Shown here: in pieces, positions 11,441 to 37,551 of the stretch | How the letters are laid out: every line of letters begins with the position of its first letter | Numbering within the stretch: the first letter of the stretch is position 1 | Assembly (NCBI RefSeq): GCF_006345805.1 | Contig: NC_043002.1 | Location: 51,832,001-51,896,000, forward strand | Source: Octopus sinensis | Lineage: Eukaryota | DNA length: 64,000 nucleotides | Direction: 5' to 3' | Translations under genes and position numbers: made by a program | The notes under the pieces: model-generated | What the model was told of the DNA's origin: nothing | Databases searched by the model: none | What the model saw: only the letters and a program-made list of their open reading frames with translations

Positions 11441-11802
11441 CTTGGCAGGAACGTTAGTACACCAGACAAAATGCTTAGCGGTATTTCGTCTGCCGTTACG
11501 TTCTGAGTTCAAATTCCGTCGAAGTCGACTTTGCCTTTCATCCTTTCGGGGTCGATAAATTAAATGCCAGTTACGCACTGGGGTCGATATAATCGACTTA
11601 ATCCGTCTGTCTGTCCTTGTTTGTCTCCTTCGTATTTAGCCCCTTGTGGGTAGTAAAAAAATAGATATTTCGTTCGCCTTTACATTTTGAGTTCAAAACG
11701 GGTTCGATAAAATAAGTACCAGTCAAGCACTGGATTCGATGAAATCGTCTTACACCCTCCACCAAAATTTCAGGCATTGTGCCTATAGTAGAAAGTATTA
11801 TT
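11441..11802 (+). mobile_element. Composite SINE-A (young copy inserted in older copy)
   Basis: Young tail gtgggtagtaaaaaaat is joined at ~11663 to agatatttcg of an old-type body. Confidence 0.85.
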
Positions 11803-12192
11803 CTTTTCTACTCAAGGCACAAGTTCCGAAATTTGGGGGGAGGGGGCCAGTCGATTAGATCGACCTCAGTATACAATTAGTACTTAATTTATCGAACCCG
11901 AAAGGCAAAGTCAACCTCGGCGGAATTTGAATTCAGAACGTAGCAGCAGACGAAATACCTATTTCTTTACTACCCACAAGGGGCTAAACACAGAGGAGGA
12001 CAAACAAGGACAGACAAACAGATTAAGTCGATTATATCAACCCCAGTGCGTAACTGGTACTTATTTAATCGACCCCGAAATGATGAAAGGCAAAGTCGAC
12101 CTCGGCGGAATTTGAACTCAGAGCGTAGCGACAGACGAAATACAGTTACGCATTTCGCCCGGCGTGCTAATGGTTCTGCCAACTCGCCGCCT
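11803..12192 (-). mobile_element. Composite SINE-A flanked by a 17-bp TSD
   Basis: TAGTAGAAAGTATTATT occurs at 11786-11802 and 12193-12209. The internal junction gaaat|aggtatttcgtc is at 11960/11961. Confidence 0.9.
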
Positions 12193-13049
12193 TAGTAGAA
12201 AGTATTATTACAAAGTGTTGAGCAGGCAGAATCATTAGCTCTTTGGACAAAATACTTCTCTTCCTCCTTTTTACGTTCAAGTTTCAATTCCCATTGAAAT
12301 TAACTTTGCCTTTGATCCTTTTGTGGTCAATGAAATAAAGTACTAGTCAAGTACTTGGATCACTGTAATGAATTCTATTAACAAACTTCTGGATTTGTAT
12401 CAGAATTAGGAAGAATTATTGCACACACAATCCTGGAGAAAAATTGGATTTTACCACGTTCATTTCAGGATGCTTTTAACACCAAAAGACGTTAGAATGC
12501 TTGATCATGTCTCTAGTAACATGGAGTGAAAAAGTAAGGGTTTTTTCTTATATTTACAAATTTGCTTAAAAATTTCTTTTCTAATGATTCAGTGTGGTAA
12601 GCTTTGGGGAGGAAGTGGGAAGAAGTGCAAACCACAAATTGGTAGCAGCGAATACTCTTCAACTAACAATAAAATACTTTAATATGTGTCAAAGTTTTGA
12701 AACAGAAGATAATTAGAAAACGATAAACAAAAAAAAAAATAGTTATGTAGACAAATATTTTGTTCATAATCTTTGACAAATACGCAAGAAAAGTATCGAG
12801 ACAGCCAAAATTTAAACAACGAAAGCAACAATAGCAATCAACTTTTTGCTAGCATTTGCCGCTCAAATTTTGAAAAAAATAAAATGTAACATATGCCACA
12901 AAAGGTGGGTCTTCTTTGCTTAATGAAGAAAGTGCAGAAGTAAAGGTGACGTACGTCTGCTCCTTGGGAAAATGAGTGATCGGAGGGGTTTCCATATACG
13001 GTCGAAGGAGTAATTAGAGAATACCTTGGCTGTGCGTGGAACGATGTGT

Positions 13050-13670
13050 CCATCGACCGAAGCGGTGTGTATGGAAGTGTATCTGGTTTTTAAGAGTAAA
13101 GACCAGGCAAGATATCAAATGGAAATAGAGTACCGCATACCTGCCTACAAGCTGATACTGCAATTTATGAGAAGAAATACACAATGCTTTGAGAGGCTTT
13201 GATTTTTTGGCTAGTTGAATTCTTTTTCTATAGCATACTGAGACCTACAGGGATTAATTATTTTAAAAGTCTTTTGTAGAAGACGGAATCTATGTTGAAA
13301 GATTTCACAGGAGAAACAAAATTCAAGGACATGGTGGCATGATCAGAGACATTTATTTGACCATCACGAATGAGAAATAACTAGCACACAGTCCAGAGCG
13401 ATGTCAAAGAAGTGCACACTCTTGGTAGGGTCTCCTATGCTGGACAGATCAAGCGACTAATATGGACCACATCCTTTTAGAGATTAAAATGGAGTTTGTA
13501 TAAGCCCATCACCGCTTACAGATGTATTGGTGACAAGTTAAAACCAAAAGAATAAAAAAAAAAGAAAAGAAAACCTAAGAGAGGAAAACAGCCTAGAGTC
13601 GAGGATAATAGAGAAATGTCATCGATCTCCTATGCCCCATAGGTAGTGACGGTCTTAAGTAAAGTGAAGT
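13050..13670 (+). mobile_element. Possible decayed RTE-clade LINE 3' end
   Basis: A GHIL(R)-like segment lies near 13465. The terminal cctatgccccata...cttaagtaaagtgaagta resembles RTE 3' ends. Confidence 0.35.
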
Positions 13671-15017
13671 ATTGCGGAATAAGCAGAATGACTGCATTAC
13701 ATAATGCTTCATGTGGTCGAAGAGCTCAATTTAACAGAAATTTTAACTACCATATCCAGAAAATCAAGTAACGACGTACAGACTCCCGAGCCAGCTTGGT
13801 TATTTGAACAGTGAAAGGTGGAAATGTCGAGAAGAGAAATGGCAGCAACGAAAAAATGGGAGAAGAGGCAATGTGGAGATGTGAAACAACACTGGTGGTA
13901 ATGGTGGTAGCAGAGGTGATAGATGGACGAAAGGGAAAATAAAAAAGAAGAGAAGAGAGCGAGTAGACAGAAATTTGAGAGAGCGAGCGAGAGAGAGAGA
14001 GAGGGGGGAGTAGGCGAGAAATGAAGTGAGATAAAAGAAATGCGATGTTGTGAGGAAAGTGAATGTGGAGGACTTAGAGAGAAAAATAGAGGATGCGATG
14101 CAGAGAAGTTAAAAGGATTGGAGATGATTTAGATTAGAGGGAAAGATAAGAAGGGGAAAGGAGAGCGTGTATAAAAAGGAGAGTGGTGGTGGGGGAGTGA
14201 TGTAGAAGGAGAGAGAAAAGTGAAAGCGAACTACAGGAAAACCAAGATGGGAAGGGGAGTGTAGTATTCGATTGATCGAGAAAAAATTTAAAGATAGAGA
14301 CAGTAACAGAGAAAGGGAAAAGTGGTGAAGAAGCGGCAAGATGAGGTTGGTTAGAGAAAACACATAGGATGATATGAGGAGCGATGGGAAGTGACAAAAT
14401 TGTGCAGAGTCAAATGGGAAGAGGCGAGAGAAAACAAGAGCAATAAACATATTTGTTAGATATTAATGGATGAAAAATAACAAGCAGAAAGGAAATAAGA
14501 ATATTTTTCATGGAAGAAATATAAAAGAACAGATGTCAGTAAATAGTTCTGAAACACATACACGTATTTGACACCACATACACGCATATTCATATGTAAC
14601 TCTTATAGTCCTCTCACACGCATAGACATTACACACGCACTGACACGCTCGTGCATGTGTGTGTGCGTGCCTGTGTGTCTGTTCGTACATTGTTCATGCA
14701 TTTGTGAGATCGTGATGTTATGTGAAGCCATCAGTTTTTCTAGACGGGGTCTCTTTGTGTCATGATTATTAAGTGCAAGTATATTAAACGCAGTATATTA
14801 ATTCATTTACAAACATCGACAAATACGCTGTGTCATTTCTTAAACACGTATAAAAGGGCTTGCTACCTACATTCCAGTTTGTTCTTGTATGCATATGTCT
14901 GATGTATGTTTTCGAAAGAAGGCTGTGGCTATAACACAATTTCTTAACGCTGTGTACTGTTTGCATTACATATAATGGAATATGCTTCGTGATATCTATG
15001 CTTCGTGGAGTACTTAT

Positions 15018-15144
15018 ACATACATACATACATACATACATACACACATACATACATACATACATACATACATACATACATACATACATACATACATACA
15101 TACATACATACATACATACATACATACATACATACATACATACA
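15018..15144. repeat. (CATA)n microsatellite
   Basis: Directly visible. Confidence 0.95.
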
Positions 15145-35844: not shown

Positions 35845-36250
35845 TCTTTTACCTGTTTCGGTCATTTGACTGCGGCCATACTGGGGCACCGCCTTAAAGG
35901 GTTTTTTAGACGAAGAAATCGACCCCAGGACTTATTCTTTGTAAGCTTAGTACTTATTATATCGGTTTATTTTGACGAACCGCCAAGTTACGGGGACGTA
36001 AACACACCAACATCAGTTATCAAGTGATGGTCGGGGAACAAACACAGACACAAAGACACACGCATACACACATTCATATATATATATATATATATATATA
36101 TATATATACCACGGGCTTCTTTCAGTTTCCGACCACTAAATCCACTCACAAGACCTTGGTTGGCCCGAGGCTATAGTAGAAAACATTTGCCCAACGTACC
36201 AGGCAGTTGCACTGAACCCGGAACCATGTGGTTGGGAAGCAAGCTTCCAC
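35845..36250 (-). mobile_element. SINE-B near-full-length copy
   Basis: Head end gggaagcaagcttc...actgaacccgg (B-box-like on the minus strand), internal CA/TA tract, 3' ...cttttacctgtttcggtc. Confidence 0.8.
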
Positions 36251-36409
36251 TTGATATATATATATATATATATATATATATATATATGTGTGTGTGTGTG
36301 TGTGTGTGTGTGTGTGTGTGTGTGTGTGTGTGTGTGTGGTGTATTTATATATATATATATATCTGTTACTTGTTTCAATCATTAGCCTGTGGCCATGCTG
36401 GGACACTGG

Positions 36410-36640
36410 AGACGCGTGGCTTTGTGGTTAGGAACTCATGATCGTAAGGTTGTGGTTTCGATTCCTGGGCCGGGTGACGCATTAAGTTCTCGAGCAAAAT
36501 ACTTCATTTCACATTACTCCAGTCCTCTCATCTCGCAAAAATGAATAATCCTGCGATGGACCGGCAGACCATCCAGGTAGTGAATATATACGCCATGGAA
36601 ACCGGGAAACTGGCCCTCTGTGCCTATATGACTAGGGACG
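36410..36640 (+). mobile_element. SINE-C (third tRNA-derived family)
   Basis: gtggttagg...tgatcgtaaggttgtggtttcgattcctgg (B box). The same head occurs on the minus strand at 52050-52250. Confidence 0.7.
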
Positions 36641-37137
36641 GATATTTATCCTGTTATCTATTTTAGTGCGGTACATATACAAACACATGAGATCACATCT
36701 AAAAGACAGATGTGTTGCTTTACCCCACCCCTGTGTATGGTACCATTTTACAATGCCATCTCTGTTCTGAAATAGCTACCTGCATACCCAGTTTTCTCAG
36801 GCTCATTCATCTCACTTATTCCCATCATCCACTTCGACTGTAACCCTGATCAGATAATACTGCTCGAAATATTTTGTCCAATTATTTGTCCCAGGAACTA
36901 AAACCCTTTTTGACCAGCTTTTTTCTTGTTGTTATAAATCTACAATTAAACACCATCGATTTCACTCGTCAAGAAATGTGGCAAATACTATGGGCACTAG
37001 CCATCTAACTAATAAAAGGGAAAACAAACAGTTAAAACATTTTCGGCAAATTTCATTTTTCTGCTTCTCAGAAAATGCTTTAGCCCTCAACAATTTATAA
37101 TACCGTGTAGCACATCAGGCAATACGTCAGTCTCATA

Positions 37138-37551
37138 GGTGGCAAGCTGGAAGAATCGTTAGCATGCCGGGCGAAATGCTTAGTGGTATTTCGTCTGTAG
37201 TTACGTTCTGAGTTCAAATTCCGCCGAGGTCGACTTTGCATTTCTTCCTTTCGGGGTCGATTAAATAAGTACCAGTTACGCACTGGAGTCGATATAATCG
37301 ACTTAATCCGTTTGTCTATCCTTGTTTGTTTTCTCTGTGTTTAGTCCCTTGTGGGTAGTAAAGAAATAGGTATTTCGTCTGCCGCTATGTTCTGAGTTCG
37401 AATTCCACCGAGGTCGACTTTGTCTTTCAACCTTTCGGGGTCGATCAAATAAATACCAGTTACGCACTGGGGTCGATGTAATCGACTTAATCCCTTTGTC
37501 TGTCCTTGTTTAACCCCTCATGCTTAGCCCCTTGTGGGCAATAAAGAAATA
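37138..37551 (+). mobile_element. Composite (apparent dimer) SINE-A with TSD
   Basis: TSD aatacgt(c)agtctcata at 37121-37137 and 37552-37567. The internal junction gaaat|aggtatttcgtct is at 37367/37368. Confidence 0.92.

Follow-up and report, generated by a model that had tools for sequence, protein, structure and literature searches.

Recurrent fixed junctions between short interspersed elements in a 64-kb stretch of the Octopus sinensis genome

Short interspersed elements (SINEs) form the largest repeat class of octopus genomes, and their expansion is often linked in discussion to cephalopod genome evolution. In a stretch of 64,000 nucleotides of Octopus sinensis DNA (contig NC_043002.1, positions 51,832,001 to 51,896,000 of the forward strand; hereafter the window), the complete tail of one SINE family is repeatedly joined to either of the same two internal nucleotides of another SINE copy, which raises the question of how such composites come about: by insertion of young elements into resident ones, by chimera formation at the RNA level, or by the spread of a ready-made dimer? 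All of our inference is based on 68 kb, that is, the window and 4.3 kb of extra flank (record L028).

SINE families and their fixed junctions

The window has the base composition of A/T-rich animal DNA (36% G+C). Using hand-built consensuses, BLAST recovered about 40 SINE copies in the window and its flank; they have a head and body of about 166 bp in common, and their tails define three families, named here Y, O and P. The Y tail reads ...TTAGCCCCTTGTGGG, followed by TAG, CAA or TAA and then TAAAGAAATA; the O tail reads ...GTGCCTATAGTAGAAAGG, with a younger branch ending in GAGTAGAAAAG; and the P tail reads ...GTGCCAAAATTTGAAAC. Y is the youngest SINE family of the stretch, its copies being 91-95% identical to their own consensus. 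Ordinary Y and O target sites open with AATA or GATA, and target-site duplications of 16-26 bp are found around solitary copies and around whole composites.

As to the identity of the family, TGGCAGAATCG (positions 11-21) and GAGTTCAAATTCC (positions 73-85) resemble a box A and a box B by eye only; ARAGORN predicted no tRNA in the window, and Rfam gave nothing at gathering score in the window; for one full-length copy, it listed no tRNA even when E values of up to 10 were allowed. The Octopus OR1 and OR2 CORE-SINEs may be what these elements are, judging by their description. No long interspersed element (LINE) with the Y tail (...CCCCTTGTGGGNNNTAAAGAAATA) was seen in the window, where every Y-tail match falls within SINE copies.

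Five times in the window, a complete Y tail is joined directly to GGTATTTCG, i.e., to consensus position 48, of another SINE copy. Given as the last base of the tail and the first base of the partner, these junctions lie at 11663/11664 (+), 11960/11959 (-), 19557/19556 (-), 37368/37369 (+) and 42995/42996 (+). The first four had been reported in the initial annotation, within 1 nt in each case, as joins of a TAG-type tail to differing downstream partners. The partners do differ (an old O tail, a GTAGAAAAG tail and, twice, a Y tail), and the outer duplications that it placed at 11786 and 12193 and at 37121 and 37552 are indeed there; the TAG-type tail holds for those four sites and not for the fifth, which has a GGGCAATAAAGAAAT (CAA-type) tail. 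All four canonical TAG-tailed (Ya) copies of the window belong to position-48 composites. The 20-mer GTAAAGAAATAGGTATTTCG has 5 matches at no more than 3 mismatches, compared with 0.02 expected from shuffles, and the probability that a random insertion would fall, correctly oriented, at 47/48 in any of the roughly 35 SINE copies is about 3e-4; five such cases among 11-12 Y tails are, thus, not due to chance.

In a second class of fixed junction, the Y tail meets AGAATCG (consensus position 15). This class is found at 760/759 (-) and 19373/19372 (-), and a third case, at position 15 or 16, lies 1.9 kb past the window end (L028 17927/17928, in a composite spanning L028 17696-18121 on the + strand, C5 below); the right partners at this position are old O or P copies. 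Altogether, 8 of the 12 Y tails in the 68 kb run directly into another SINE at 48 or 15. The same target nucleotide and orientation recur in five events at 48 and in three at 15 or 16. At all eight junctions, both units have the same orientation, the Y 3' end is complete (with one base changed in C6 and one base fewer in C5), and host bases are neither duplicated nor lost; no inner target-site duplication is present at any of them. The left partner is Y every time, while the right partner may be old O, young O, P or Y. BLAST of the window and flank found no SINE copy that starts at 15 or 48 without a Y tail ahead of it.

Insertion of Y is not confined to positions 48 and 15: three copies (37369-37551, 41094-41273 and 41595-41827) occupy sites unrelated to these and have ordinary duplications, the last of them being nested in opposite orientation within an old P copy (together 41470-41925). 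Two candidate explanations of the preference were rejected. An association between Y subfamily and target class (TAG with 48, CAA with 15, TAA with ordinary sites) is not significant (p = 0.09-0.27), and a bottom-strand nick motif AT[AT]YY^GC cannot be its sole cause, with 91 occurrences in the 68 kb, some of them at SINE positions that are never used. The position-48 junction (e.g., window 37358-37377) has the sequence GAAATA-GG-TATTTC, in which the six bases that end the Y tail are the reverse complement of head positions 50-55; there is no such relation at position 15.

The composites are listed in Table 1 with two control copies. The span 19206-19788 (C3) is a trimer of Ya, Yb1 and P, the second unit of which takes part in two junctions, as right partner at position 48 and as left partner at position 15. 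The A-box region that C1 has captured is degenerate (TTGGCAGGAACG), and no convincing duplication was found in the flanks of C6.

Table 1. Units, outer duplications and control copies (window coordinates; numbering within units follows the consensus).
Feature	Coordinates	Strand	Description
C0 left unit	760..993	-	14 diverged bases of head (979-993) followed by Yb (consensus 15-231) with tail GTGGGCAATAAAAAAATA
C0 right unit, old O family	556..759	-	from consensus 15 (AGAATTGTTAGC), 77% identical
C1 host head, old O-type	11437..11479	+	5'-truncated, diverged (CCAGACAAAATGCTTAGC), old-family states GGAC-AAAATG
C1 inserted Ya segment	11480..11663	+	consensus 48-231, tail GTGGGTAGTAAAAAAATA, 94% identical to Y consensus, without indel of at least 5 bp
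C1 host body, old O-type	11664..11797	+	from consensus 48 (GATATTTCG...) to tail GTGCCTATAGTAGAAAG; 83% identical, 32-bp deletion
C2 left unit, full-length Ya	11960..12192	-	v1-type head GCGTAACTGTATTTCG; G43 and T48, the v1 pair
C2 right unit, young O	11803..11959	-	from consensus 48, tail ...GAGTAGAAAAG; 89% identical, 8-bp deletion
C2 outer target-site duplication	11786..11802 and 12193..12209	.	TAGTAGAAAGTATTATT, exact 17-mer
C3 unit 1	19557..19788	-	head and Ya body, tail GTGGGTAGTAAAGAAATA
C3 unit 2, Yb1	19373..19556	-	from consensus 48, tail GTGGGCAATAAAGAAATA; 95% identical
C3 unit 3, old P family	19206..19372	-	from consensus 15 (AGAATCATTAGC), tail ...AAAATTTGAAAC; 86% identical, three deletions of at least 8 bp
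C4 left unit	37138..37368	+	head and Ya
C4 right unit, Yb1	37369..37551	+	from consensus 48
C4 outer target-site duplication	37121..37137 and 37552..37567	.	AATACGTCAGTCTCATA and AATACGT-AGTCTCATA
C6 left part, degenerate 5'-truncated Y fragment	42934..42995	+	about consensus 159-231, ...GGGCAATAAAGAAATT; no SINE head upstream
C6 right unit, old P family	42996..43144	+	from consensus 48 (GGTATTTCTTTCGAC)
Solitary Y copy (control)	41094..41273	+	26-bp target-site duplication GATAATATTATT... at 41070 and 41274
Y nested inside old P copy, opposite orientation (control)	41595..41827	-	22-bp duplication TCGTCGATAGAATAAGTAC..., 41573-41594 and 41828-41849

A protein search with a junction-spanning reading frame returned one match, an ENA metagenome contig of 543 bp (L025), in which a full Y-type SINE is followed by the 3' third of an O-type SINE; the junction falls at O position 121-123, with ATAAAT microhomology, and the contig is probably octopus host DNA in a microbiome sample. 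Exact scans of metagenome, prokaryote-genome and viral collections with the Y-tail pattern gave chance matches only, without SINE sequence.

Probable old hosts and young inserts, and the competing explanations

What has to be explained is the anatomy of the composites, their recurrence, the diversity of their partners and the contrast between old host and young insert in C1, all of which are observed. The reading that we favour, and to which we give about an even chance, is that the composites are repeated in-register nested insertions of Y into resident SINEs at the DNA level. Each composite would then run from host position 1 to x-1, through Y from x to 231, and on from host position x to the end, with x being 48 or 15.

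The clearest case is C1. Relative to the Y consensus, its head (positions 1-47) has diverged at 14 of 45 sites (31%) and its Y segment at 7 of 154 (5%; p = 5e-6), and only 1 of 5 CpG sites is kept in the head vs 12 of 12 in the body. Once the head (11437-11479) is joined to the right unit, the two align as one coherent old O element; the switch on the left falls between positions 37 and 49, and host-type sequence returns within 1-9 nt of the right junction, on the narrower estimate within one or two bases. The same trend, though weaker, is seen in C0 for the 14 bases upstream of position 15 (4/14 vs 10/185, p = 0.01). Across the composites, the inserted Y segments are 93-95% identical to the consensus and all seven are free of indels of at least 5 bp, whereas the non-Y right units are 76-89% identical and four of the six carry deletions of 8-32 bp (Fisher's exact p about 0.02, calculated by hand).

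The right units themselves belong to old O (C0, C1, C5), young O (C2), P (C3, C6) and Y (C3, C4); as they come from at least four families, there is no single dimer master. The initial annotation had proposed nested insertion in place of a dimeric master, had suggested comparing the divergence of host head, inserted unit and host body, and had held that a single subfamily of composites with equally diverged halves would speak for an Alu-like master instead. Its proposal stands in part. The TAG-tailed left units do form one subfamily (7-11% pairwise divergence), the right units do not. Within the window, the comparison of divergence favours an old host in C1 and, more weakly, in C0, and does not discriminate in C2, C3 and C4. 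Indeed, C3 (units 1 and 2) and C4 are both Ya followed by Yb1, with halves equally diverged (7.7% and 7.1%), and a mobile Ya-Yb dimer is possible for these two; C2, C3 and C4 are compatible alike with nested insertion, RNA-level chimeras or mobile dimers.

One has to set several observations against nested insertion. A solitary control copy also has a more diverged head (p = 0.03), and C0 alone is therefore not decisive. In C2, the head pair 43/48 (G43 with T48, the latter from C48) goes with the Y body, and G48 is the first base of the right unit, from which it follows that the left crossover is not always at x or that the head there is Y's own; and no host head is present upstream of the Y part in C6 or L025. 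Duplications enclose C2 and C4 in their entirety, which is what insertion in a single step would leave, although these are also expected under nested insertion because the host could have carried them beforehand. Positions 48 and 15 fit the AATA/GATA target starts just loosely, and a degenerate nick motif is present at other SINE positions that are never used. All of the evidence, moreover, comes from 68 kb.

The head of the element adds a further difficulty. In sense RNA, positions 31-43 pair with 48-60 to give a 13-bp hairpin capped by a 4-nt loop, TAGC (e.g., window 37168-37197), and the hairpin covaries: pair 43:48 is T.G 12 times, G-C 3 times and T-A 3 times, pairs 41:50 and 34:57 vary too yet stay paired, and the head variants GCTTAGCGG and GCGTAGCCG are two paired states of the same hairpin. 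Position 48 is the first base past the loop of this conserved structure, and the GAAAUA of the Y tail is complementary to UAUUUC at positions 50-55. Both the position in the hairpin and the complementarity of the tail hint at an RNA-level step.

Such a step is central to the alternative that ranks next, a chimera formed at the RNA level in one retrotransposition, which we consider unlikely. Here, reverse transcriptase would start on an O, P or Y tail, run off at 48 or 15, and jump to the 3' end of a Y RNA, which it would copy; the 5' end at 48 or 15 could result, for example, from cleavage in exposed loops of the tRNA-like head. Duplications around whole composites are what this model predicts, position 48 adjoins the loop of the hairpin, the GAAAUA/UAUUUC complementarity could tether the Y RNA, the C2 left unit is concordant at 43 and 48, and C6 and L025 are without a host head. 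It does not account for the C1 head, which is old O-type and not Y-type, nor for right units that have decayed to the point of carrying deletions in four of six cases. Jumping would also have to be nearly obligatory, since there are no solitary copies truncated at 48 or 15; no O-O or P-P chimera was seen; and most Y copies would have to be passengers, not primary insertions.

The composites could also act as source genes, one or a few dimers (e.g., Ya-Yb1) being transcribed from the left head and retrotransposed via the right tail, so that the junction is simply inherited. We regard this, too, as rather unlikely as a general account. C3 (units 1 and 2) and C4 are its best witnesses: in addition to their common Ya-Yb1 make-up and equally diverged halves, their right units have G81 and A195 in common, and C4 has an outer duplication; the confinement of the four Ya copies to position-48 composites goes in the same direction, as does the resemblance of C6 to a 5'-truncated copy of a composite. 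Against a common source are the four or more families of right units, two of them old and degenerate, the different head types carried by closely related Ya bodies, and a position-15 junction class with yet other partners. This diversity of partners, heads and junction classes means that the junction formed several times.

Break repair or ectopic gene conversion, in which a monomer is repaired from a dimer elsewhere and the Y segment and junction are copied out of register, seems to us quite improbable: it would leave the left side seamless and make no duplication, the junction being inherited, but the homology in C1 is too short for conversion (left switch at 37-49, host sequence resuming within 1-9 nt of the junction) and the break would need to occur at the same point every time. 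Chance adjacency or an assembly artefact is very improbable, given 5 observed junctions for 0.02 expected and flanks, partners and strands that differ at every site. These rivals are not mutually exclusive with nested insertion or with one another, as a composite, once formed, could itself be copied.

Proposed mechanism and other features of the window

For in-register nested insertion, we infer a nick, a homology-guided joining and a reason for the preference for 48 and 15. In a first step, the bottom strand of the resident SINE would be nicked at x; in a second, the reverse transcriptase of a partner LINE would start at the exact 3' end of the Y RNA (...GAAAUA); in a third, the nascent complementary DNA (cDNA) would anneal to host sequence beside the nick and so resolve the 5' side, through in-register ligation or a crossover within the head and with no second staggered cut. 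The outcome would be one illegitimate junction (Y end to host x) and a seamless homologous join on the left, the outer duplications belonging to the host SINE. Because of the homology between cDNA and host, no inner duplication would be made, the host sequence would stay intact and the same orientation would be obligatory. The ordinary 22-bp duplication of the Y copy nested in opposite orientation fits a homology that is available in the same orientation only. The initial annotation had called for a 5'-truncated newcomer that would inherit the A box of its host and, with an RNA polymerase III promoter thus restored, might feed a self-reinforcing loop of amplification; truncation is not required, as homology-guided resolution of the 5' side fits the seamless left boundary equally well. 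The left unit would then be a hybrid SINE with a host-derived promoter end, and position 48 would be intact again, making chains possible.

Going one step further, the Y lineage might home into the anticodon-like hairpin (48) and the box-A region (15), thereby placing its own body and tail behind a resident RNA polymerase III promoter; we offer this as a speculative, rather doubtful extension. In R1 and R2, downstream rRNA sequence guides priming. By analogy, target choice might be heritable here: composite transcripts that continue past the Y tail into GGUAUUUCG... could direct where priming occurs in the next SINE head.

If most Y copies do land in register in older heads, repeat annotations and age landscapes that take the composites for dimers, or for full-length copies of their own, would be distorted. 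Newer 3' modules would recycle SINE promoters, a DNA-level route to the module shuffling of mollusc SINEs, and the partner LINE or the SINE RNA would have a nucleotide-precise target preference that could serve as a natural system in which to study targeted integration. Should the homing idea be true as well, a SINE would parasitise the promoters of other SINEs via in-register, duplication-free insertion.

Other SINE arrangements occur in the window. Same-orientation pairs at 9950-10450, 19780-20050, 29670-30150 and 40440-40875 have three copies of one 8-22 bp sequence between and around their units (e.g., AATATTTTAGTATGTTTT, AATACTTTTGCATGTTTT and GCTATTTTTCATGCTTT), and the units are 80% identical in the single pair compared; such pairs result either from two insertions that re-used one target site or from an old event in which element and flank were duplicated in tandem. 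At 40468-40716, one SINE copy has an internal tandem duplication of about 45 bp (ACGAGTTCAAATT...GTCTTTCATCCTT, twice).

Beyond SINEs, the window contains a Helitron-like element (54611-58839) with PIF1-type helicase frames at 57323-57700 and 57794-58345; a 130-residue frame of this helicase corresponds to a gene call on CM016864.1 (GCA_006345805.1), 51.88-51.90 Mb. The element is 85-88% identical at the DNA level to a copy on O. bimaculoides chromosome CM046619.1 (L029), which was considered and rejected as an empty-site comparison, being a paralogous Helitron copy and not the orthologous site. The regions 31626-34088 (-) and 53056-53559 (-) hold a remnant of a non-LTR reverse transcriptase (LTR, long terminal repeat), split over several frames, and a mariner-type transposase fragment; the remnant has an (ATA)n run at its end, and the relatives that match it best do so at 91% (a Logan contig) and 77% identity. 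The Y tail is absent from both the non-LTR remnant and the mariner-type fragment, and the mariner reading frame has no database record. Low-complexity and trinucleotide tracts (5235-5860, 6759-7310, 7584-8342 and 47278-47633) produce spurious open reading frames, 100-250 codons long, on either strand.

Comparison with known systems

The nearest candidates by host are the octopus CORE-SINEs OR1 and OR2 of Ohshima and Okada (1994; cited in PMC4824008 and PMC4758252). The elements of the window resemble them in host genus, in a length of about 210-230 bp, in motifs that by eye look like boxes A and B, and in a common body with family-specific tails. A text search for "octopus" and "dimer" in these two papers found no fixed-junction octopus composites; literature searches for SINE dimers surfaced no cephalopod SINE paper, and, in the literature on octopus transposable elements, the one octopus genome paper that was checked does not contain the words dimer or nested. 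Sequence motifs searched in literature text gave no real match, the three incidental matches of one 12-mer being in unrelated papers.

Alu is a dimeric SINE. Unlike Alu, the octopus composites are without a single master, with right units from at least four families and ages, and only C3 and C4 have the same pair of unit types. Dimeric and trimeric SINEs built of tRNA units are also known (PMC4758252). As in Alu and these complex SINEs, the units follow one another head to tail with their orientation in common, and the internal promoter would come from the left unit; as in complex SINEs, some composites (C2, C4) are flanked as wholes by duplications, with none between units. In contrast to complex SINEs, the octopus tail is joined to an internal position of the head (48 or 15) and not to the 5' end of a unit, and the left head can belong to the element of the right unit (C1).

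U6-L1 chimeras are a familiar example of chimeric retrocopies that result from template switching. The octopus composites resemble these in layout, with what may be a complete upstream RNA copy joined to a 5'-truncated downstream copy within one pair of duplications; an upstream part that copies the acceptor RNA in full, 5' end included, is compatible with C2, C3 and C4 and is not what is seen in C1. Exchange of SINE modules and chimeric retrocopies have been attributed to template switching by LINE reverse transcriptase (reviewed in PMC4758252). Unlike template-switch chimeras, however, the octopus composites have a truncation point fixed to the nucleotide and an acceptor that is always Y, and the host-type head upstream in C1 is impossible from a single jump.

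Target-specific non-LTR elements include R1 and R2 in ribosomal DNA, the Tx1 group in small-RNA genes and TRE at tRNA genes. The octopus case resembles them in that insertions recur at one nucleotide of a repeated target, with their orientation fixed and with little or no duplication. SINEU is a further point of reference (described in PMC4494074). Unlike target-specific elements, Y is also found at ordinary A/T-rich sites with 16-26 bp duplications, its target lies within a different SINE's head, and the window showed neither a partner LINE nor the endonuclease of one.

Ordinary nested insertion of one transposable element into another differs from all eight junctions, which have no host duplication of their own, while the Y copy at 41595-41827 does have one. 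A parallel for the proposed 5' step comes from L1, some insertions of which are resolved when the cDNA anneals to an L1 already resident, or by microhomology-mediated 5' joining. As in homology-resolved L1, the 5' end of a target-primed insertion would be settled by homology with genomic sequence; the difference is that, in the octopus composites, the homologous element would be the target itself, giving an in-register partial tandem with no deletion.

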